A stretch of DNA of 64,000 bases from positions 2,542,001 to 2,606,000 of the forward strand of contig CATNEN010000005.1 in NCBI GenBank assembly GCA_950097015.1, in the 5' to 3' direction. The notes beneath the pieces were generated by a model, which was given only the letters and a program-made list of their open reading frames with translations, had not been told where the DNA came from and searched no databases. Origin of the DNA: Macrostomum hystrix (Eukaryota > Animalia > Platyhelminthes). Of this stretch, positions 2,843-40,367 are shown piece after piece; within the stretch, counting starts at the first letter, position 1; every line of letters starts with the position of its first letter. The translations under genes were made by a program, and so were the position numbers.

Positions 2843-4920
2843 CTGAAGGATGGGGTAGAGACCGTCTGAAGGATGGGGTAGAGACCGTCTGAAGGATGGG
2901 GTAGAGACCGTCTTAAGGATGGGGTAGAGACCGTCTTAAGGATGGGGTAGAGACCGTCTGAAGGATGTGGTAGAGACCGTCTGAAGGATGGGGTAGAGAC
3001 CGTCTGAAGGATGGGGTAGAGACGGTCTGAAGGATGGGGTAGAGAGAGACCGTCTAAAGGATGGGGTAGAGACCGTCTGAAGGATGGGGTAGAGACCGTC
3101 TGAAGGATGGGGTAGAGACCGTCTGAAGGATGGGGTAGAGACCGTCTGAAGGATGGGGTAGAGAGAGACGGTCTGAAGGATCTGATATTCCTGAAGGATG
3201 GGGTAGAGACGGTCTGAAGGATGGGGTAGAGACCGTCTGAAGGATGGGGTAGAGAGAGACGGTCTGAAGGATCTGATATTCCTGAAGGATGGGGTAGAGA
3301 CCGTCTGAAGGTTGGGGTAGAGACCGTCTGAAGGATGGGGTAGAGACCGTCTGAAGGATGGGGTAGAGACCGTCTGAAGGATGGGGTAGAGACCGTCTGA
3401 AGGATGGGGTAGAGACCGTCTGAAGGATGGGGTAGAGACCGTCTGAAGGATGGGGTAGAGACCGTCTGAAGGATGGGGTAGAGACCGTCTGAAGGATGGG
3501 GTAGAGACCGTCTGAAGGATGGGATAGAGACCGTCTGAAGGATGGGGTAGAGACCGTCTGAGGATGGGGTAGAGACCGTCTGAAGGATGGGGTAGAGACC
3601 GTCTGAAGGATGGGGTAGAGACCGTCTGAAGGATGGGGTAGAGACCGTCTGAAGGATGGGGTAGAGACCGTCTGAAGGATGGGATAGAGACCGTCTGAAG
3701 GATGGGGTAGAGACCGTCTGAAGGATGGGGTAGAGACCGTCTGAAGGATGGGATAGAGACCGTCTGAAGGATGGGGTAGAGACCGTCTGAAGGATGGGGT
3801 AGAGACCGTCTGAAGGATGGGGTAGAGACCGTCTGAAGGATGGGGTAGAGACCGTCTGAAGGATGGGGTAGAGACCGTCTGAAGGATGGGGTAGAGACCG
3901 TCTGAAGGATGGGGTAGAGACCGTCTGAAGGATGGGGTAGAGACCGTCTGAAGGATGGGGTAGAGACCGTCTGAAGGATGGGGTAGAGAGAGACGGTCTG
4001 AAGGATGGGGTAGAGACCGTCTGAAGGATGGCGTAGAGAGAGACGGTCTGAAGGATGGGGTAGAGACCGTCTGAAGGATGGGGTAGAGACGGTCTGAAGG
4101 ATGGGGTAGAGACCGTCTGAAGGATGGGGTAGAGAGAGACGGTCTGAAGGATGGGGTAGAGACCGTCTGAAGGATGGGGTAGAGACCGTCTGAAGGATGG
4201 GGTAGAGACCGTCTGAAGGATGGGGTAGAGACCGTCTGAAGGATGGGGTAGAGACCGTCTGAAGGATGGGGTAGAGACCGTCTGAAGGATGGGGTAGAGA
4301 CCGTCTGAAGGATGGGGTAGAGACCGTCTGAAGGATGGGGTAGAGACCGTCTGAAGGATGGGGTAGAGACCGTCTGAAGGATGGGGTAGAGACCTTCTGA
4401 AGGATGGGGTAGAGAGAGACGGTCTGAAGGATGGGATAGAGACCGTCTGAAGGATGGGGTAGAGACCGTCTGAAGGATGGGGTAGAGACCTTCTGAAGGA
4501 TGGGGTAGAGAGAGACGGTCTGAAGGATGGGGTAGAGACCGTCTGAAGGATGGGGTAGAGACCGTCTGAAGGATGGGGTAGAGACCGTCTGAAGGATGGG
4601 GTAGAGACCGTCTGAAGGATGGGGTAGAGACCGTCTGAAGGATGGGGTAGAGACCGTCTGAAGGATGGGGTAGAGACCGTCTGAAGGATGGGGTAGAGAC
4701 CGTCTGAAGGATGGGGTAGAGACCGTCTGAAGGATGGGGTAGAGACCGTCTGAAGGATGGGGTAGAGACCTTCTGAAGGATGGGGTAGAGAGAGACGGTC
4801 TGAAGGATGGGATAGAGACCGTCTGAAGGATGGGGTAGAGACCGTCTGAAGGATGGGGTAGAGACCTTCTGAAGGATGGGGTAGAGAGAGACGGTCTGAA
4901 GGATCTGATGTTCCTGAAGG
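2843..4920. repeat. 23-bp minisatellite CTGAAGGATGGGGTAGAGACCGT (with 27-bp variants)
   Basis: Direct tandem copies. Confidence 0.97.
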
Positions 4921-5293
4921 ACATTCAATTCAAAAGTAAAATTAGACTGAACAAAGTCGTGCCTGCTATTGCGATGCTCAAGTGTTTTATATTTCATCTA
5001 TACTCAGCCTCCAAGTTGTTTCGGAATAGCAATGCCTTAGCTTGCTAATTTCTGGTTTGGGAGTCAGTTAAATAATTAAAGTTCAGGTCTTTTGATTTAT
5101 TACTTTGCTACGTTCGCGCTTTCATGAAAAGTCACAATAACAATTGTTCGTAATTAACAAATAAATAAAGCTATCAAGCTTAGGTTTGCTTAAAAAAATC
5201 AAGATTTATCAAATCTCTTTAAAGCAGTAACTTTCCGTTTAGATGTTAAGCGCTGCCGAGGCCGTCCATGTTTTTATTTCTTAGCCTTAGCAA

Positions 5294-7790: not shown

Positions 7791-8079
7791 AGACGAACGG
7801 ATGCCGAGTTGCTCTCCGTCAGTTTGCTCAACGGAGCAACATTTTTTATAAGACACTTCTGTGTTCTTGAAGCAAGCCTGATTTTTTCAACGCTCTCTGC
7901 AGAAATTCCTGTTCCAAATAAAAAATCTATTTTCCGACGTGAAAACTTCTCGAAAACTATTTACTCGAAAAATTCTTCATGTTTCTTAAAATTTCTAGAA
8001 ACTGAAGCTTTGGAGTTGTGCTGAAGGACATACGCAATGTCACTTTCACACTCTCTCTATCAGTTGCTCATCTCTCACT

Positions 8080-11000
8080 TTCTCTCCCACAGTCTCACCG
8101 TCACACTGGCTCACAGTCTCACTGTCTCACTGTCTCACTGTCTCACTGTCTCACTGTCTCACTGTCTCACAGTCTCACTGTCTCACTGTCTCACAGTCTC
8201 ACAGTCTCACTGTCTCACTGTCTCACAGTCTCACTGTCTCACCGTCACACTGGCTCACAGTCTCACTGTCTCACTGTCTCACTGTCTCACTGTCTCACAG
8301 TCTCACAGTCTCACTGTCTCACTGTCTCACAGTCTCACAGTCTCACTGTCTCACCGTCACACTGGCTCACAGTCTCACTGTCTCACTGTCTCACTGTCTC
8401 ACTGTCTCACAGTCTCACAGTCTCACTGTCTCACTGTCTCACAGTCTCACAGTCTCACCGTCACACTGTCTCACCGTCACACTGTCTCACAGTCTCACTG
8501 TCTCACAGTCTCACTGTCTCACTGTCTCACTGTCTCACTGTCTCACAGTCTCACAGTCTCACAGTCTCACTGTCTCACAGTCTCACAGTCTCACCGTCAC
8601 ACTGTCTCACAGTCTCACTGTCTCACAGTCTCACAGTCTCACTGTCTCACAGTCTCACTGTCTCACAGTCTCACAGTCTCACAGTCTCACTGTCTCACTG
8701 GCTCACAGTGTCACTGTCTCACTGTCTCACAGTCTCACAGTCTCACAGTCTCACAGTCTCACTGTCTCACTGGCTCACAGTCTCACTGTCTCACTGTCTC
8801 ACTGTCTCACTGTCTCACTGTCTCACTGTCTCACTGTCTCACAGTCTCACTGTCTCACTGTCTCACTGTCTCACTGTCTCACTGTCTCACAGTCTCACAG
8901 TCTCACTGTCTCACTGTCTCACAGTCTCACTGTCTCACTGTCTCACTGTCTCACTGTCTCACAGTCTCACTGTCTCACCGTCACACTGGCTCACAGTCTC
9001 ACTGTCTCACTGTCTCACAGTCACACTGTCTCACAGTCTCACAGTCTCACAGTCTCACAGTCTCACTGTCTCACTGTCTCACAGTCTCACTTTCTCACTG
9101 TCTCACAGTCTCACCGTCACACTGGCTCACAGTCACACTGTCTCACAGTCTCACAGTCTCACAGTCTCACAGTCTCACTGTCTCACCGTCACACTGGCTC
9201 ACAGTCACACTGTCTCACAGTCACACTGTCTCACAGTCTCACAGTCTCACAGTCTCACAGTCTCACTGTCTCACTGTCTCACAGTCTCACTGTCTCACAG
9301 TCTCACAGTCTCACTGTCTCACTGTCTCACAGTCTCACTGTCTCACCGTCACACTGGCTCACAGTCTCACTGTCTCACTGTCTCACTGTCTCACTGTCTC
9401 ACAGTCTCACAGTCTCACTGTCTCACTGTCTCACAGTCTCACAGTCTCACTGTCTCACCGTCACACTGGCTCACAGTCTCACTGTCTCACTGTCTCACTG
9501 TCTCACTGTCTCACAGTCTCACAGTCTCACTGTCTCACTGTCTCACAGTCTCACAGTCTCACCGTCACACTGTCTCACCGTCACACTGTCTCACAGTCTC
9601 ACTGTCTCACAGTCTCACTGTCTCACTGTCTCACTGTCTCACTGTCTCACAGTCTCACAGTCTCACAGTCTCACTGTCTCACAGTCTCACAGTCTCACCG
9701 TCACACTGTCTCACAGTCTCACTGTCTCACAGTCTCACTGTCTCACTGTCTCACAGTCTCACTGTCTCACAGTCTCACAGTCTCACAGTCTCACTGTCTC
9801 ACTGGCTCACAGTGTCACTGTCTCACTGTCTCACAGTCTCACAGTCTCACTGTCTCACTGGCTCACAGTGTCACTGTCTCACTGTCTCACAGTCTCACAG
9901 TCTCACGGTCTCACAGTCTCACTGTCTCACTGGCTCACAGTCTCACTGTCTCACTGTCTCACTGTCTCACTGTCTCACTGTCTCACTGTCTCACTGTCTC
10001 ACAGTCTCACTGTCTCACAGTCTCACTGTCTCACTGTCTCACTGTCTCACAGTCTCACAGTCTCACCGTCACACTGTCTCACAGTCTCACTGTCTCACAG
10101 TCTCACTGTCTCACTGTCTCACAGTCTCACTGTCTCACAGTCTCACAGTCTCACTGTCTCACTGTCTCACAGTCTCACTGTCTCACCGTCACACTGGCTC
10201 ACAGTCTCACTGTCTCACTGTCTCACAGTCTCACAGTCTCACCGTCACACTGTCTCACCGTCACACTGTCTCACAGTCTCACTGTCTCACAGTCTCACTG
10301 TCTCACTGTCTCACTGTCTCACTGTCTCACAGTCTCACAGTCTCACAGTCTCACTGTCTCACAGTCTCACAGTCTCACCGTCACACTGTCTCACAGTCTC
10401 ACTGTCTCACAGTCTCACAGTCTCACTGTCTCACAGTCTCACTGTCTCACAGTCTCACAGTCTCACAGTCTCACTGTCTCACTGGCTCACAGTGTCACTG
10501 TCTCACTGTCTCACAGTCTCACAGTCTCACAGTCTCACAGTCTCACTGTCTCACTGGCTCACAGTCTCACTGTCTCACTGTCTCACTGTCTCACTGTCTC
10601 ACTGTCTCACTGTCTCACTGTCTCACAGTCTCACTGTCTCACTGTCTCACTGTCTCACTGTCTCACTGTCTCACAGTCTCACAGTCTCACTGTCTCACTG
10701 TCTCACAGTCTCACTGTCTCACTGTCTCACTGTCTCACTGTCTCACAGTCTCACTGTCTCACCGTCACACTGGCTCACAGTCTCACTGTCTCACTGTCTC
10801 ACAGTCACACTGTCTCACAGTCTCACAGTCTCACAGTCTCACAGTCTCACTGTCTCACTGTCTCACAGTCTCACTTTCTCACTGTCTCACAGTCTCACCG
10901 TCACACTGGCTCACAGTCACACTGTCTCACAGTCTCACAGTCTCACAGTCTCACAGTCTCACTGTCTCACCGTCACACTGGCTCACAGTCACACTGTCTC

Positions 11001-12362
11001 ACAGTCACACTGTCTCACAGTCTCACAGTCTCACAGTCTCACAGTCTCACCGTCACACTGTCTCACCGTCACACTGGCTCACAGTCTCACTGTCTCACAG
11101 TCTCACAGTCTCACAGTCTCACAGTCTCACTTTCTCACTGTCTCACAGTCTCACAGTCTCACTGTCTCACTGGCTCACAGTCTCACAGTCTCACAGTCTC
11201 ACAGTCTCACAGTCTCACTGTCTCACTGTCTCACTGTCTCACTGTCTCACTGTCTCACAGTCTCACTGTCTCACTGTCTCACAGTCTCACAGTCTCACTG
11301 TCTCACCGTCACACTGGCTCACAGTCACACTGTCTCACAGTCACAGTGTCTCACAGTCTCACAGTCTCACAGTCTCACAGTCTCACCGTCACACTGTCTC
11401 ACCGTCACACTGGCTCACAGTCTCACTGTCTCACAGTCTCACAGTCTCACAGTCTCACAGTCTCACTTTCTCACTGTCTCACAGTCTCACTGTCTCACTG
11501 TCTCACTGGCTCACAGTCTCACAGTCTCACAGTCTCACTGTCTCACTGGCTCACAGTCTCACTGTCTCACAGTCACACTGTCTCACAGTCTCACAGTCTC
11601 ACAGTCTCACAGTCTCACTGTCTCACTGTCTCACAGTCTCACTTTCTCACTGTCTCACAGTCTCACCGTCACACTGGCTCACAGTCACACTGTCTCACAG
11701 TCACACTGTCTCACAGTCTCACAGTCTCACAGACTCACTGTCTCACAGTCTCACAGTCTCACTGTCTCACAGTCTCACAGTCTCACAGTCTCACTGTCTC
11801 ACTGTCTCACAGTCTCACTTTCTCACTGTCTCACAGTCTCACAGTCTCACAGTCTCACAGTCTCACCGTCACACTGGCTCACTGTCTCACTGTCTCACAG
11901 TCTCACTGTCTCACCGTCACACTGGCTCACAGTCTCACTGTCTCACCGTCACACTGGCTCACAGTCACACTGTCTCACAGTCACACTGTCTCACAGTCTC
12001 ACAGTCTCACAGTCTCACAGTCTCACCGTCACACTGTCTCACCGTCACACTGGCTCACAGTCTCACTGTCTCACCGTCACACTGGCTCACAGTCTCACTG
12101 TCTCACTGTCTCACAGTCTCACAGTCTCACTGTCTCACTGTCTCGCAGTCTCACAGTCTCACTGTCTCACTGGCTCACAGTCTCACTGTCTCACAGTCTC
12201 ACTGTCTCACAGTCTCACAGTCTCACAGTCTCACAGTCTCACAGTCTCACAGTCTCACAGTCTCACAGTCTCACTGTCTCACTGGCTCACAGTCTCACTG
12301 TCTCACTGTCTCACTGTCTCACTGTCTCACAGTCTCACAGTCTCACAGTCTCACTGTCTCAC
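8080..12362. repeat. 8-bp satellite TCTCAC(T/A)G with kilobase-scale higher-order duplications
   Basis: 4.3-kb array. The rare variant GGCTCACAGTGTCAC recurs at about 8700, 9804, 9860 and 10486. Confidence 0.97.
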
Positions 12363-12914
12363 GTGTCCCTCCAGTTGTTTATCAATTCACCATTAGCAAT
12401 CAGTGAGTCAAGTGTTAGTTAAGGCTTGAGCTGCAAACATCCTTGAGCAGGCAACTCAAATCAGGAATAGCTGATGCAAAAAAAGTCATTAAAGTGTCGA
12501 AGATGTAGGAGGCAGGTGTAGCTAAAAACATTGCTACAAGGTCTGAAGAAAACATAAATTGATCCTGACGGTAATCTACTCTGACGAAGAAAAAAGTTGT
12601 CGGCGTTAATAAACATTTCGTCCAGGTTATCGTTTGTAAAATCCCAAATTCACATTGACGTGTAGCGGTTAGACTTTTTTTGGAGGGGTTCTTAAGAGGC
12701 CAAATAGATCCCCAAATAGAACTATTGGGGATCTAGATTATCGAATACAGGTAATTGTACAGTTGACTAAATATAGATACCTTAATCGTTCTCCAACTTA
12801 GGAAGATATATTATAGAAGTATTTGACAAACACAAATACAAACCTACTCAATACTTCTCAAAATAAGTAAGCAACGACTCAAAACGGACTTAAAAACGAC
12901 CAAAACATACTGAA

Positions 12915-17110: not shown

Positions 17111-20100
17111 ATGTTGAGTTTAGAGCCGTCCAGACTGCAGAATCTGCCAAAACCTCCAGCATTCCTGGATCCGCTATCCAGCCTAGAAAGCAGCTATTAC
17201 TATTCTATTCCAAAATTTCATCCGGCCAATCATCCGGTCACCACCTGGCTGCTGAAGCGCATCCTCTCTCACGACGTCGAGTCCATCAAGCGAAAGCTGG
17301 AGCTGTGTCCGACCTTGCTGCAGGAGCGCTATTTTCAACTGGTCGACGATCCATGCATCTATGCGAGCAACAGCGACACCGACTGCATGTTCCACCGCAA
17401 GTGCCTGCTGTATCTAACACCGCTGGCTATTGCAATCTATTTCAAATCGGTGAGATTTGGCTTCTGGATTCTAGAGACTAAAAGGAATCAGACAAGGTGG
17501 AGAGACCTTGAGAGTAGGGGGTGAGAGTGAGGGCGAGAGAGAGGGCGAGAGAGAGGGCGAGAGAGAGGGCGAGAGAGAGGGCGAGAGAGAGGGCGAGAGA
17601 GAGGGCGTGAGACAGGGGCGAGAGAGAGGGCGAGAGGGAGAGGTTGAGAGAGAGGGCGAGAGAGAGGGCGAGAAGGAGAGAGAGAGAGCGGGAGAGAGGA
17701 TAGAGCACACTGCCCATTGAATTTAAAAAATCGAATGTTGGAATTGATTCCGATATGTATCGAAAAAATTGAAACATATCGGATGGACGGATTCGAACCA
17801 ATGCAACTCCAGACGCCTTTCGCTCTTGTTGGAGCTCATCAGTAGAGTCTAGCCTTGCGCTTTAGCCATTCGGCTATAGGCGCTTGCTCAAATCCAGCTT
17901 TCAACCTCAACATATCGAAATCGTGAGACAGGGGCGAAAGAGAGGGCGAGAGAGGGGGAGAGAGAGGGCGAGAGAGAGGGCGAGAGAGAGGGATGAGAGA
18001 GAGGGAGAGAGAGAGCGGGAGAGAGGAGAGAGGACACTGCCCATTGAATATCAAAAATCTAATGTTGGAATCGATTCCGATATGTATCGAAAAATTTGAA
18101 ATCCGGATTCGAACCAAGGCAACTCCAGACGCGTTTCGCTCTCATTGAAGCTCATCAGTAGAGAGGGGGAGAGAGAGGGTGAGAGAGAGGGCGAGAGAGA
18201 GGGTGAGAGAGAGGGGGAGAGAGAGGGCGAGAGAGAGGGTGAGAGAGAGGGGGGAGAGAGAGGGTGAGAGAGAGGGGGAGAGAGAGGGCGAGAGAGAGGG
18301 CTTGAGGGAGGGGGCCAAGAAGGTCATGATTAGATACGATGCAAATCTAATGCAAGTGAAATCCCTATGCAATCCAGTATGAAGTGGCAGACGTTCTGCT
18401 TTCGCATCAACCTACGACTGAAACCAACGTAGCGATGTGCGAGGCGCCCCAGTTCTGTAGCCACCTGCAGGACAAAGTCGGTGGAGATTTCCACGCCTAT
18501 CCAATATTTATAATTGTGCTACGCAGGTCAGTATTCGCAGCCGTGTCGCTGCTAGCCCGTTGCGGCTGGCGAGCTGCCCAACCGATCGCCATGCCTCTGA
18601 GAAGGCGTTTTGAGCGCAGGATAATCTACTTTAGAGACTGGCTTGACGCGGCCTTAAGCGTACTGCAAGCTAGGCCGAATTACTCTCTGGCTACTCTAGT
18701 TCATCACGTGACCTGCACTCCTGGCTATGAGTACATTCAACTTCCAGTTGGCGCCGTGTCGGCCAAATCTAAATTGGACCCGAAGGAAGTGGAAAATGAT
18801 GACGAAAAATCGGCAACTAAAAAGAAGAAGAAGCGAAAAGATGCGAATTCTGTTTTGCATCAACAGCCGGGACTTTTGGAATTCGGAAACCAGCCACCCT
18901 CCGTGCCAATTGTTGGAGTAAAAAATATCGCCGAATTGTGCCTGATGGTTGACACGTTCAGACAGACTAAGAACAGAGCCAAAGAAATTAGAACCCTGAT
19001 GAGCAAAGCTGTGAACAATGGCTTGCACCCTGAGGTCGTGCTTACTAAAGCGTTGGACGATATTCAGCCTGATCTGGAGGATAGGAATAACAATTACTTC
19101 GCTGATCTGATGCGGCGGAATCGTGAGTTGATCTTAGGAATAGTTGGATACTAGTTAGATGCGTTTTGTAAACTGTTAGACGCCTTAGACACAGGGACTC
19201 ACTTGTCAGAGACGCCGTGATTCACCTGTTAGACACAGTGACTCTTACCTGACTCACCTGTTAGACATGATAACTCACCTGTTAGACATGATAACTCACC
19301 TGTTAGACACAATAACTCACCTGTTAGACACAATAACTCACCTGTTAGACACAATAACTCACCTGTTAGACACAATAACTCACCTGTTAGACACAATAAC
19401 TCACCTGTTAGACACAATAACTCACCTGTTAGACACAATAACTCACCTGTTAGACCCAGTGACTCTCACCTTACTCACATTTTAGACATGGTGACTCACC
19501 TGATAGACAAAGTGACTCACCTGTTAGACACGATAACTCACCTGTTAGACACAATAACTCACCTGTTAGACACGATAACTCACCTGATAGACACGATAAC
19601 TCACCTGTTAGACACGATAACTCACATGTTAGACACGATAACTCACATGTTAGACACGATAACTCACCTGATAGACACGATAACTCACCTGATAGACACG
19701 ATAACTCACCTGTTAGACACGATAACTCACATGTTAGACACGATAACTCACATGTTAGACACGATAACTCACATGTTAGACACGATAACTCACATGTTAG
19801 ACAGGGTGACTCACCTATGAGACACTATGGTTCACCTGTTAGACTCGGTGTCTCCCCTGTTACACACGGCTTGTCAACAGATAAACCCCAGAAACGGAGA
19901 ATTAGTTTCCAATCACTTTTTCGTCCATCAGAATTCGGCGGCCCATCGAACAGCAACAATCACGCCGCTTCTGCTACCAATGAGCCGATGCAGCCCATGC
20001 AGAACGAGCATTGCTCTGAACCAGTTCGAATCCTGCTGTGTGGCCTAGAACGCTCTCGTTTTCGTCAGCTTTGTCTGGACGCTGTCGCCGTGTACGTCAG

Positions 20101-36700: not shown

Positions 36701-39301
36701 ACACCTCAGTCCGTCAGCCTAAATTTGTTATTCTGTCGCTCTACAGATTGGGCCTTTTTCGCAAGGACCAATAGAAGAATATGGACGGGACACTACGTTT
36801 CTTGGAAAAGTTATTAAAGGCAGATTTTCACAGAAGATGCACTAGCAAGATAGAAAATTTTTCACTCTTTCACATTAAAATGTTGATAACTTTTTATTGG
36901 AAGCATATACAATTATGTTCTTTTAATATGCGAACCATCTCAGAAAGCATGTTGCTTTAACGAGTTTAAGAAAGCATCATTTAATTTTATGTCTGATTGG
37001 CTGCTATTGTGCGTCATAATAAACAAGCGAAAATTAAATAAAGATCAACTAGCCTATTGATCTAGGGCGGATAGCTCAGTCAGTAAGGTGTCGGACTCTG
37101 GATCAGATGGTCCTGGGTTCGACTCCCGACCTAGTCTAGAACTATTCGTGCAGCCTTTGGCAAGCTGCTTTGCCCTGATGTGCGCACAGTCTACTCAGCT
37201 GCAAATGACTACCGACATTTCGTCGTGTAATAATAATTCCGGCTGGCGTGGAATAAAGCAGTTCTGTGCGGCAAATCTGTGGGGTTTGGATGCTGCCGAT
37301 ATGTTTGGAAAAAAAATTCCATTGCTGACACGCGGCTGTCAACCGGTGTCCGAGAGAGCCGGGGAGTACAATAGGTGTGCAGTCCCCACCTGCTAGTGTG
37401 CCTACACACAACACCTGCACTGGCCCTTGGGTCTAGTGTCATTATTATTATTATTAACTATTGATGAATGACAGCTTTCTAAAATTGGTTGAAGCGACAT
37501 GTTTTACAAGTTATATTAAAATGAACAGCATTGGATCAGCTTCCAGTGAAAAGTTATCAGCATTTTAATGTGAAGAAGTGAAAGAATTCCTATCTCGCTA
37601 CTCTACTGCATTTTTCCTTGAAAATCTGCCTTCAATAATTTTTCCAAGAAACAAACTATCCCATCCTTGCTTTTTCGCTGCTTGAAAAGTAGCGAATGTC
37701 AGCCTGAGAACAAACACATCGGAAACAGTCACGATCGCCTATGCTAATCAGTTATAATAATAATAATTTATTACACCTGCCCCAATTGGGTCAGATGTGC
37801 AGCCGACAGCACAGCCGCAGCTATTGCGCGGCGCATCTGAAGGCTGCGTACAGCTGTTCAGTCCATGGACTGGGGGGACGCCACACCCACCTTCAATTAT
37901 CCCAGCTGATGCTGGTACTCATTTAACAGCTGGGTGAACTGAAGCAATGCAGAGTTAAGTGTCTTGCTAAAGGACGCAAATTGTTCCAGTGGAGTCGGGA
38001 ATCGAACCCCCGACCTTCAAGTCGTGAGTCCGACGCCCTAACCACTAGGCTACAACCTCTTTTAATCACTTAATTTGTGTTATTTCATTTCATTTCCAGT
38101 CATTTCCGAATTTCCGAGTCGTTTCCGAAAATTCCTATTTTAGACTGTATATAAAAGGCGATACACAATGGACTCAATTTATCGGAGTTTGAACAACAAG
38201 ATGCACAAAACTGAACGAACTTTGCAGCAATACTATACCTGAGCGATCAGTTTCAGGATTGGAGAAATCAGTCTGCTGTTGTTGAGCAGCATGAGTCATC
38301 AGCTGGAACACTCCGTTGCGAAATCTGCCAACAGCCGCCGAGTGTAGAATGGGCAGTCCTACTGAGCATCGGCGCTTCAAGTTCTGCGGCCTGGCAGAGC
38401 GCAGTTCGTCGGCTCGCTCCACACTGACAATGTCTGGCGCTGAGCTGTTGTTGCTGTGGTTGTTGTCGTAGGCTACCGGGGCCGAGGTAGATGTTTCCAG
38501 AGCAGCGGCGACTGCCTCAGCCATTGCCCTACCGTTGCTGCTGGAATAGTTTGTCATTGCAATGCCTCCATTCTCTTGTCTGGCTTCGGCGTTAGCGGCG
38601 TCGGTTGCATCGACGCCTGCGGCAGCCACCTCAGGTTGACGTCGTCTAGCGGAGGCGATGAGGGAACGAACTCGAGCTTCCAGTTGTTCGTTGAATTTCA
38701 TGAAGATCACGTAGGCCGCATAGCAGGCTAGGAGGGCCACGGACTCGTACCAGTCGATGCGAGAGTCCTTGAAGGCGATTGTGAGCAGGGTCAGTGACAG
38801 CATGTAGAAGCAGCAGTCGCGGAACAATGGCCACCACGTGAGCTGCAGGACTCCCTTGGAGAAGAATGCGCACATGCTCAGCACGAATAGAATGTTAAAC
38901 ACGGCACTGCCAACGATTGTGCCGATGCCGACGTCGCTAACGGACACGAAGGCGCCCAGGAATGAGGTGGCCAGCTCGGGCGCGGAGCCGCCGGCCGCCA
39001 TGAAGGTGGCACCGGCTACATCGTTTGAGATGCGCAGTCGCCTAGTGATGACAGACAGGCTAGGCACAAAGAACTCGTCGCACACAATGGCCAGAGCGCA
39101 GAACATGTAGAGCAGGCCGATGCAGTGAAGCACAATGGCTCCGCGGTTTTTCTGCTCACAGGTGAAGACGTCGCGTGGGTACTCACCGGTGGCTTCGCTG
39201 TCATTGCAATGAATCGACGGGTCGTGACTTTTTCCCGGCGCTGCAGTTGTTTTCTGCATGACCACCGCGATGACGACAGCAACGAGTACAGTGGAGGACA
39301 T
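30710..39301 (-). CDS. SLC24A: K+-dependent Na+/Ca2+ exchanger (NCKX/SLC24 family), 650 aa; exons 39301-38239, 34536-34280, 32586-32464, 31725-31606, 31099-30710
   Basis: Alpha-1 repeat ([43 protein letters not shown]) and alpha-2 repeat ([41 protein letters not shown]) typical of NCKX. All five exons join in phase with canonical GT-AG. Confidence 0.93.
31190..31535. repeat. Degenerate 16-17-bp repeat CTGAAGTTT(T)ATCCTC (intronic)
   Basis: Tandem copies decaying toward the right. Confidence 0.85.
31840..32000. repeat. 57-bp repeat x3, each copy carrying CTGATTGGCT (CCAAT box)
   Basis: Three near-identical units. Confidence 0.85.
32695..33630. repeat. 33-bp minisatellite GATAGACAGGTGAATAGAATGATGTAACTCGTG with an inverted block and a central (AATAG)n tract
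   Basis: Reverse-complement units at 32730-32890, (AATAG)n at about 32896-32948, forward units at about 32945-33625. Confidence 0.93.
34035..34135 (+). mobile_element. SINE family C, internal fragment
   Basis: CTGCCTGACGATGAGAAAGTCAGGG.AGATGTACACACCTGTGTGAG..CTCAGGAGTCAG is the reverse complement of about 13668-13764. Confidence 0.65.
35010..35215 (-). mobile_element. SINE family C, diverged 5' portion
   Basis: Aligns with 13730-13920 (GCCTCGCC.CGGA.TCGAGCTCAGG, AATTGC.CGACAAGCC). Confidence 0.55.
35265..35660 (+). mobile_element. tRNA-derived SINE, family B, with 18-bp target-site duplication
   Basis: Head GGGCGGATAGCTCAGTCAGTAAGG..GGTTCGACTCC and (ATT)n tail. TTATTACATGACGTTTCA occurs at both 35229-35246 and 35657-35674. 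Confidence 0.88.
37065..37456 (+). mobile_element. tRNA-derived SINE, family B (second copy)
   Basis: High identity to 35265-35660 along its full length. Possible CTATTGAT TSD. Confidence 0.85.
37753..38059 (-). mobile_element. tRNA-derived SINE, family A (inverted copy)
   Basis: Reverse complement of 40368-40690 with few substitutions, including the tail. Confidence 0.85.
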
Positions 39302-40367
39302 TGCTGATAAATCGCGGCTTCGCAATATTGAAGTGCTGTTAATTAATTCTTTTCTTCTATACACTTTAATAAGCCTTGTACTCTTTCATGAGGGTCTTCC
39401 TGGTCTGCTTTAATGATTTGCTTACCGCCCAGCAGCCGCTGTCGACTCTCCTAGCCCTCCTATGGTTGCGCCTAATCTTTTATGCTCGTCAGGAGCTAAT
39501 CCACTGGATAGCTTTTTTTCGCTTCCCCACCAGCGACGGTCCTTGTGCCCTACCCATGCATGTGCATCTTTACTAGGTTTAATCATTCTTATTTTCGCCT
39601 TGTGTCCTTCTAGAATCCACGAGCGTGCGTCCGATTGGTCCCTAGGATGTTCGATCATCTTCCCTGATTCTCTTCTCGGGGGGGGGATCTGAGGATTCGG
39701 CATTTTCACCTGTCTACTTTACCGGATGGGGTACCGGGGGAGGGTCTGGTCGGCGGTCGTCTCAATTTTCTTTCTCCCCGTTTCCCTGTCTCTACACTTT
39801 GTTAAGTAGCGAGTCGTGACAACCCAGCTCTCCCTTTTCTGCCTGCCCGCCTGTCATTTGCGAAGTGACCGAAATTAGTATTTTAGCTATGCGAGCAGGA
39901 AAAAGGCATAGCAGTGTATTACACGAGGCCAGGAATTCAAGCAAAATGATTGGACTAGGCTAGACATGAAGCTTGGTTAAGCCTTTAAACACTGTGCTCG
40001 TTTCTCGGCAGGACTCGCTCGAACAAAGTTGGGTCTACTAAAAACCACGTAGCACGCATTTTGTGCTTCGTATTTGGTTGCGTAGATTTAGTGTCAAAAA
40101 TGCTGGAAATCACGCGATACCCTAAAACTACAACCCAGAAATGGAAATGGATTTGCGGCAAAGAGGTTCATTTTTGATTGTCAGTTGCGCGTGAAATTAA
40201 ATACATGCATGATACAGATCTCTGACCACGATTTTGTGATGCAACGTGAAGAGTTATTGCTTTCATTTATTTTTGTTCGTTCATTTAATTAACTTTGACC
40301 TGCTCTCTACAGAATATATCTTCTACATATGCATTTTTTGAAAAATATTAGCGAACTATAATTTAAA

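Follow-up and report, generated by a model that had tools for sequence, protein, structure and literature searches.

Two Hammerhead Ribozymes in an Intron of Macrostomum hystrix: Probable Nested Copies of a Retrozyme-Like Repeat Family

Introduction

Hammerhead-bearing repeats that spread via small circular RNAs are a recently recognized class of animal mobile elements, and their promoters, partners, and insertion rules are under debate. Does a pair of hammerheads separated by 316 nt mark a working unit of this class? The question is raised by an intronic locus in a 64,000-nt stretch of the genome of the flatworm Macrostomum hystrix (NCBI GenBank assembly GCA_950097015.1, contig CATNEN010000005.1, positions 2,542,001 to 2,606,000 of the forward strand), referred to here as the window. 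An earlier sequence-only reading had seen there a tandem pair of self-cleaving ribozymes in a unit resembling a short interspersed nuclear element (SINE) with an RNA polymerase III (Pol III) head. As described below, the locus is probably a composite of two old, 5'-truncated insertions of a single non-coding, retrozyme-like retroelement family, in which copy 2 was inserted first and copy 1 was nested in it later.

The two hammerhead motifs

Both hammerheads are encoded on the minus strand, at 18163-18121 (copy 2) and 17849-17805 (copy 1), and every one of these previously reported coordinates was verified. Both motifs contain the CUGAUGA, GAAA, and GUC elements of a type I core in the correct order and at the correct spacing, as well as a 5-bp stem I and a 4-bp stem II with a 6-nt loop, and both catalytic cores are intact. 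Copy 2 reads CUCUA-CUGAUGA-GCUU-CAAUGA-GAGC-GAA-ACGCGU-C/UGGAG (stem I CUCUA at 18163-18159, CUGAUGA at 18158-18152, and UGGAG at 18127-18123), with the slash marking the predicted cleavage between C18128 and U18127. Copy 1 reads CUCUA-CUGAUGA-GCUC-CAACAA-GAGC-GAA-AGGCGU-C/UGGAG (CUCUA at 17847-17843, CUGAUGA at 17842-17836, and UGGAG at 17811-17807), with the predicted cleavage between C17812 and U17811. The cleavage sites are indeed 316 nt apart (18128 - 17812). A search of the window with the pattern CTGATGAG-N10-16-CGAAA returned these two matches, against 0.03 expected. In a permissive Rfam scan, the best model was Hammerhead_HH9, with 26.3 bits (E 5e-4) for copy 1 and 23.3 bits (E 5e-3) for copy 2, yet both scores fall below the HH9 gathering score of 52, and a scan of the window in gathering mode reported no hammerhead.

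It had been noted previously that stem II and its loop differ between the copies while pairing is maintained. This is true but carries little weight, as the differences amount to one C-to-U change that leaves a U.G wobble in stem II of copy 2, plus changes in the loop, none of which is compensatory. In copy 2, the distal part of stem I has been lost through truncation. In copy 1, the distal stem I is weakened, and a C15.2-to-G change (AGGCGU) puts a G.G mismatch into the helix III that two paired ribozymes would form. Judged from these changes, both ribozymes in the window appear weakened, and nothing suggests that either is active at this locus.

The repeat family in the genome

The repeat family to which the two copies belong is dispersed, non-coding, and hammerhead-bearing, of a retrozyme- or Sm-alpha-like kind, as had been surmised. 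The 220-Mb genome contains from 73 (exact family motif, with 0 matches in the reversed control) to 91 (looser ribozyme motif) intact ribozyme motifs, and a signature of the tail was found at 124 sites (0 in the control), representing at least 124 3' ends. Some 30 tail-signature sites have no hammerhead nearby (e.g., C1:6590171, C2:238393, C5:511441, and C5:710750) and represent either copies whose truncation lies 3' of the ribozyme or a related element with a common 3' end. Four loci with other CTGATGAG...CGAAAC matches outside the family were also inspected; these have a coding-like or repeat context and no element structure, and they look like chance matches.

The family was aligned from 30 copies found by the ribozyme motif and then from 40 copies picked by whole-unit similarity irrespective of the ribozyme. 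The unit consists of a CT-rich block of ~47 nt, a 5' part of ~165 nt, a tRNA-like 5' half with an A box, the hammerhead, a B box, a T6 run 9 nt farther on, a 3' part of ~85 nt, and a terminal CT-rich block that grades into minisatellites whose repeat unit is locus specific. It is non-coding (the longest stop-free stretch in a trimer is 80 amino acids, and the GC content is 0.488) and young, with ~2% divergence among copies. Single units with a CT head and a CT tail account for 27 of 53 distinct loci; in 14 others, a full unit follows a 5'-truncated copy; the remaining 12 are truncated and comprise 8 with a single 5'-truncated copy and 4, including the locus in the window, with two truncated copies. 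In 17 of 41 loci, each scoring above the 95th percentile of a shuffled-pair control, the same locus-specific minisatellite flanks the element on both sides. These minisatellites blurred an automatic search for target duplications, which shows just that flanks match better within loci than between them.

Perfect dimers are found at C25:3259677/3260013, C33:43200/43536, and C39:11766696/11767032, each with a period of exactly 336 nt. This period, and not the 316-nt interval proposed previously, is the length of the family unit. Both ribozymes match the consensus in just one of these dimers, that of C25 (L026/L027). In the two others, the downstream ribozyme is altered: one (L059:733-763) has GUG in place of GUC at the cleavage triplet and is predicted to be inactive, and the other (L060:637-667) has AUGCGU in helix III. 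A different kind of cluster is seen in C38 (L033, G000:C38:21521000-21530999), where five element copies are spaced by 1589, 690, 1589, and 680 nt and parted by arrays of a 10-nt minisatellite, several hundred to ~1400 nt in length, forming a higher-order repeat of ~2.28 kb. This cluster was considered as a possible coding element and rejected, since it consists of element copies and long 10-nt minisatellite arrays.

Nesting of copy 1 in the tail of copy 2

Neither copy in the window is complete. Copy 2 is truncated at stem I and matches positions 207-383 of the family reference (92.3% identity in blastn), that is, it lacks the entire 5' part; copy 1 starts at about position 131 (131-383, 87.2% identity) and lacks 130 nt of the 5' part. 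Most family copies are ~94-98% identical to the reference, and both window copies are thus worn. The two also diverge from each other in loop II, helix III, subfamily markers on the A-box side, and an 11-nt insertion that copy 1 carries after its B box. Copy 1 and its tail are bracketed by a 29-nt direct repeat with 28 of 29 positions identical, and the variant unit CGCCCCTGTCTCACG is present in the window solely in the two 29-nt repeats (0.01 expected). No further locus of this family is found in the window. The simplest reading of this arrangement is that copy 1 with its tail represents a second, later insertion into the CT-rich array trailing copy 2, accompanied by a target-site duplication. 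Because copy 1 is read as nested in that array, the 316-nt spacing would be incidental, an accident of nesting.

The rival interpretation, namely a true tandem retrozyme dimer with a tRNA-type Pol III head, from which the 316-nt interval is released by double cleavage and circularized, draws on the intact cores, the shared orientation of the two ribozymes, the A and B boxes retained in copy 1, and an interval that lies within the 170- to 400-nt range of retrozymes (PMC7229834). It is hard to reconcile with a family period of 336 nt, with two independent 5' truncations in copies of different age and subfamily, and with the direct repeat that brackets copy 1 by itself. Moreover, the T5 run at 18094-18090 and the T6 run downstream of the copy 1 B box would halt Pol III before it had spanned both ribozymes.

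RNA folding points in the same direction. The three natural 336-nt monomers, taken from cleavage site to cleavage site, have minimum free energies (MFE) of -120.3, -112.7, and -127.5 kcal/mol (z scores of -4.4, -3.3, and -5.8), and 0 of 100 shuffled sequences were as stable. In the predicted rod, the 5' and 3' parts are base-paired with each other, and a GA-rich stretch is the partner of the CT block. By these predictions, the canonical 336-nt unit would share the rod-like character of retrozyme RNAs, which are highly self-paired (PMC7229834). The 316-nt interval of the window has an MFE of -75.8 kcal/mol and a z score of -0.24, with 45 of 100 shuffles as good, and forms no rod. Taken together, these observations make a tandem dimer at this locus very improbable.

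Ribozyme structure and conservation

Stem I of consensus copies comprises an internal loop as well as a GGC/GCC helix at its distal end. Since steric constraints in folding forbid a 2-nt loop on a 2-bp stem, helix III of the monomer shrinks to a lone A-U pair that closes CGCG. However, ACGCGU is a palindrome, and two ribozymes can form a 6-bp helix III with a predicted energy of -8.9 kcal/mol. A ribozyme of this kind, the HHR_Amex1 hammerhead of newt and axolotl, has one pair closing a palindromic tetraloop and cleaves well only as a dimer (PMC7229834). By analogy, the palindromic helix III implies that the family ribozyme is dimer dependent and would cut efficiently only when two of them pair. 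MFE folding of isolated ribozymes is uninformative for the non-canonical core.

Among the 40 copies chosen by whole-unit similarity, the paired and core positions of the hammerhead deviate from the consensus at 0.9%, whereas the remaining body positions do so at 1.8% (Fisher p 0.015). Loop II deviates at 7%, whereas the A and B boxes deviate at 1.7%, no better than the body. Stem II variants found genome-wide include loop changes, wobbles, and mismatches but never compensatory pairs.

The tRNA-like module and Pol III

In copy 1, the ribozyme lies between the A box and the B box at the positions reported previously (Table 1). The A box matches the consensus at 10 of 11 positions and the B box at 11 of 11, and the two are 77 nt apart from start to start, a workable spacing. 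The boxes are genuine tRNA relics, and the D-arm segment of the element resembles that of a tRNA-like gene at 37990-38059; as read from this layout, the hammerhead appears to occupy the anticodon/variable-arm position of a tRNA-gene-like module. The gene at 37990-38059 is itself on the minus strand and scores 31.8 bits with the Rfam model, just over the cut-off; it has a 3-nt gap in the T arm, ARAGORN gives no tRNA call for it, and it may represent either a tRNA pseudogene or a further repeat of tRNA origin.

These relics would fit a classical tRNA-derived SINE whose A and B boxes drive Pol III transcription and which depends on a long interspersed nuclear element (LINE) for its movement, with the hammerhead as a passenger that has no role. 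The 5' truncations, the simple-repeat 3' tail, and the direct repeats are all typical of target-primed insertion, and a hammerhead is also found in Sm-alpha, a SINE of tRNA origin (PMC2770079). Nevertheless, the tRNA-like module does not head the element but lies in its middle, its A box being preceded by ~165 nt of conserved sequence, and the unit contains two potential terminators, the T6 run 9 nt past the B box and a further T5 run, both of which are kept in the consensus. No tRNA or cloverleaf was found at the element by ARAGORN, and the Rfam tRNA model had no match in 17300-18500 at E values up to 10. Given a T6 run beyond the B box and 165 nt of element ahead of the A box, the module is unlikely to serve as a Pol III head of the classic SINE type, the role postulated in the sequence-only reading; the missing tRNA call and box conservation no better than that of the body further disfavor a SINE-style Pol III template. 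The greater conservation of the ribozyme, the rod fold, and the existence of circularly continuous copies longer than one unit are likewise at odds with a passenger hammerhead, and a classical SINE appears an unlikely description of the family.

A different role for the same boxes would be that of a working Pol III mini-gene inside the retrozyme, in which A box, hammerhead, B box, and T6 produce a ribozyme RNA of ~110 nt. Such an RNA could serve as the pairing partner with which solitary copies and read-through transcripts would be cut in trans. This is a long shot, but if true, retrozymes would possess their own promoter, a feature that published ones reportedly lack.

Relationship to known hammerhead repeats

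Non-LTR (long terminal repeat) retrozymes are self-paired type I hammerhead repeats of 170 to 400 nt that are also present in platyhelminths, and some of them need dimers to cleave (PMC7229834, PMC7761336). The M. hystrix family resembles metazoan members of this group in its non-coding unit of ~336 nt, type I hammerhead, GC content under 50%, rod-like monomer, weak helix III of the HHR_Amex1 type, tandem arrangement at some loci, and direct repeats of >4 bp. It differs in consisting mostly of solitary copies of 1.0-1.6 units, in its modest copy number of ~10^2, in its fixed CT-rich tail and association with CT-rich minisatellites, and in the position of the ribozyme between A and B boxes followed by T6, whereas retrozymes seem to be promoterless (PMC7761336). 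Judged by its DNA, the family looks like a non-LTR retrozyme that would yield a rod-shaped 336-nt RNA and carries a hammerhead with a palindromic helix III. On the whole, it is a fairly ordinary element of the retrozyme type, with the placement of the ribozyme between tRNA-gene promoter boxes as its unusual feature.

The schistosome repeats Sm-alpha and Sj-alpha are ~335 bp in length. Like the family described here, these flatworm repeats combine tRNA-derived sequence with a type I hammerhead that has a 4-bp stem II and a 6-nt loop (PMC2770079). Copies related to Sm-alpha are called as tRNA-Gln by tRNAscan-SE (PMC2770079), so the tRNA part of Sm-alpha is taken to be a continuous cloverleaf. 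In M. hystrix, by contrast, the tRNA-like segment is broken up by the ribozyme and gives no tRNA call. The copy numbers also differ, at ~10^2 here and >10^4 for Sm-alpha.

The similarity to Hammerhead_HH9, an amniote intronic ribozyme (Rfam clan CL00010), extends to stem II and its loop (GCUCCAAxAAGAGC), which are nearly identical to the HH9 consensus, and, in consensus copies, to the internal loop and distal GGC/GCC helix of stem I. However, the best family copies score 38-42 bits and the window copies 23-26 bits, none of them reaching the gathering score (52), helix III is much shorter, and the element is a mobile repeat, whereas HH9 occupies a conserved single-copy intronic site.

The closest parallels in insertion behavior come from Penelope-like elements (PLEs), which form partial tandems and favor microsatellites (PMC8557442). 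The minisatellites on both sides of M. hystrix copies and their partial tandems agree with these PLE insertion habits (PMC8557442). Hammerheads in PLE pseudo-LTRs also share with the family a dimer-dependent minimal helix III, partial tandems whose upstream copy is 5'-truncated, and a bias toward microsatellites (PMC8557442; PMC7761336); they differ in that stems I and II of the family are full-sized, not minimal, and no reverse transcriptase or endonuclease open reading frame (ORF) is attached. The unit could accordingly be viewed as the solo pseudo-LTR of an autonomous PLE and not as a separate non-autonomous family, given that the dimer-type type I hammerhead, partial tandems, and microsatellite association are all PLE traits (PMC8557442, PMC7761336). 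Against this view, conservation among the 30 copies selected by motif fades in the flanks past the CT-rich blocks, the 53 loci compared have no further element sequence beside the copies, and no similarity was found to the reverse transcriptase loci compared. The latter were taken from a genome search with the Pfam RVT_1 model, which gave 1998 candidates; the best 150 were scored, and the 30 top loci, when compared with the element, have no sequence in common with it. The corresponding search for GIY-YIG domains gave two weak matches in frames of 310-313 amino acids. A solo pseudo-LTR is thus very unlikely, and the preferred reading remains a non-autonomous retrozyme-like family.

A proposed life cycle

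How such a family could spread beyond what the anatomy of its DNA tells is inferred here from the literature. PLEs have been proposed as the mobilizers of animal retrozymes (PMC7229834; bioRxiv 10.64898/2026.07.22.740005), and retrozymes have been proposed to be PLE derivatives (bioRxiv 10.64898/2026.07.22.740005). In M. hystrix, the few dimeric loci might be transcribed as read-through or Pol II RNA, paired hammerheads would cut the transcripts, and an RtcB-type ligase of the host could close the monomers into circles. Target-primed copying of the circles into CT-rich repeats would then fall to a reverse transcriptase, Penelope-like or of another non-LTR type. Copying of this kind could account for copy lengths of 1.0-1.6 units as well as for the 5' truncations and the partial tandems.

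Several observations weigh against the retrozyme-like, nested interpretation. The family forms dimers at most and no long tandem arrays, and most copies are solitary. The ribozyme exceeds the body in conservation by a modest margin, shown in a single test, and the family is too young for covariation, its stem II variants being either wobbles or pair-breaking changes. The 29-nt direct repeat that brackets copy 1 sits in a periodic array, and the periodicity supplies part of its length. Finally, no autonomous partner was found: the GIY-YIG search of the genome gave just the two weak matches, and the 30 reverse transcriptase loci compared have nothing in common with the element.

What the family contributes is a clean consensus in which a ribozyme is nested in a tRNA-gene-like cassette within a unit predicted to form a 336-nt rod, as well as a strong association with CT-rich minisatellites and with its own tails. 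As it is small and young (~10^2 copies with ~2% divergence), its source loci and insertion rules could be fully resolved. The locus in the window, a worn nested pair, is of minor interest by itself; read as above, it would show that family members insert into tails of their own kind and can account for the greater part of an intron.

The host gene and other features of the window

The composite of the two copies was said to lie antisense in an intron, and mapping of homologues to the plus strand upholds this (Table 1). The tblastn alignments of homologues end at 17449-17452 and restart at 18366-18390, with the block after residue ~113 starting at about 18378. The donor site is GTGAG at 17450; for the acceptor, we infer the in-frame AG at 18376-18377. 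Similarity to six representative homologues (phmmer E 8e-49) marks the ORF at 18384-19154 (plus strand), within exon 2, as a genuine exon; the named homologues of the gene are Macrostomum lignano proteins. The composite (~17522-18300) occupies ~86% of intron 1, and because it is antisense to the gene, the host pre-mRNA carries just the inactive complement of the hammerheads.

Table 1. Features of the hammerhead locus and its host gene (window coordinates)
Feature	Position	Strand	Basis
Host exon 1 (ATG 17111)	17111..17449	+	tblastn of six homologues, residues 1 to ~113
Intron 1 (putative), GT...AG, phase 0, 928 nt	17450..18377	+	Homologue alignment gap and splice-site reading
Right flank CCCCCTACTCTCAAG, possible partner of 18301-18314	17507..17521	-	Sequence reading
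Continued 12-mer CT-rich array	17522..17605	-	TRF: 17510-17698, period 12, 15.4 copies
Right 29-nt direct repeat beside copy 1	17606..17634	-	28/29 identical to 17922-17950
CT-rich tail of copy 1	17635..17705	-	Sequence reading, family alignment
Copy 1 body: partial 5' part, tRNA-like half, hammerhead, B box, T6, 3' part	17706..17923	-	blastn
T6 run, Pol III-terminator-like, 3' of copy 1 B box	17763..17768	-	Kept at family consensus position 274
B box GGTTCGAATCC, copy 1	17789..17799	-	11/11 match
Hammerhead of copy 1	17807..17847	-	Sequence reading, Rfam HH9 26.3 bits, motif search
A-box-like TAGCCGAATGG, copy 1	17866..17876	-	10/11 to TRGCNNAGTGG
Left 29-nt direct repeat beside copy 1, target-site-duplication-like	17922..17950	-	28/29 identical to 17606-17634
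Conserved CT-rich tail of copy 2, merging into 12-mer array	17937..18032	-	Sequence reading, TRF, family alignment
Copy 2 body: hammerhead, B box 18115-18105, T5 18094-18090, 3' part	18033..18163	-	blastn to family reference
Hammerhead of copy 2	18123..18163	-	Sequence reading, Rfam HH9 23.3 bits, motif search
CT-rich 12-mer array upstream of copy 2	18164..18300	-	TRF: period 12, 11.7 copies, 90% matches
Left flank CCCCCTCCCTCAAG, possible imperfect target duplication of whole composite	18301..18314	-	Resembles CCCCCTACTCTCAAG; tentative
Host exon 2	18378..19154	+	phmmer E 8e-49 to P0001, residues 119-347; tblastn

Between exons 2 and 3 of the host gene, a 21-nt tandem repeat (9.7 copies, 98% matches) spans 19252-19455 and 19488-19820 on the plus strand; it has an open frame that would encode a peptide repeat of the THLLDTI type, and it may be either coding or intronic. 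Neighboring host genes are represented by two long ORFs on the minus strand, one at 38174-39364 with a sodium/calcium exchanger domain (E 3e-30) and the other at 2936-4924 with a SAM/Pointed domain (E 2e-13). On the plus strand, ~4.4 kb at 8018-12406 are open in several frames and have a strong C-over-G skew; the Pfam matches in this region (T4 gp5 repeat and MraZ) look spurious, and it is probably a long simple or minisatellite array resembling those found beside the hammerhead elements.

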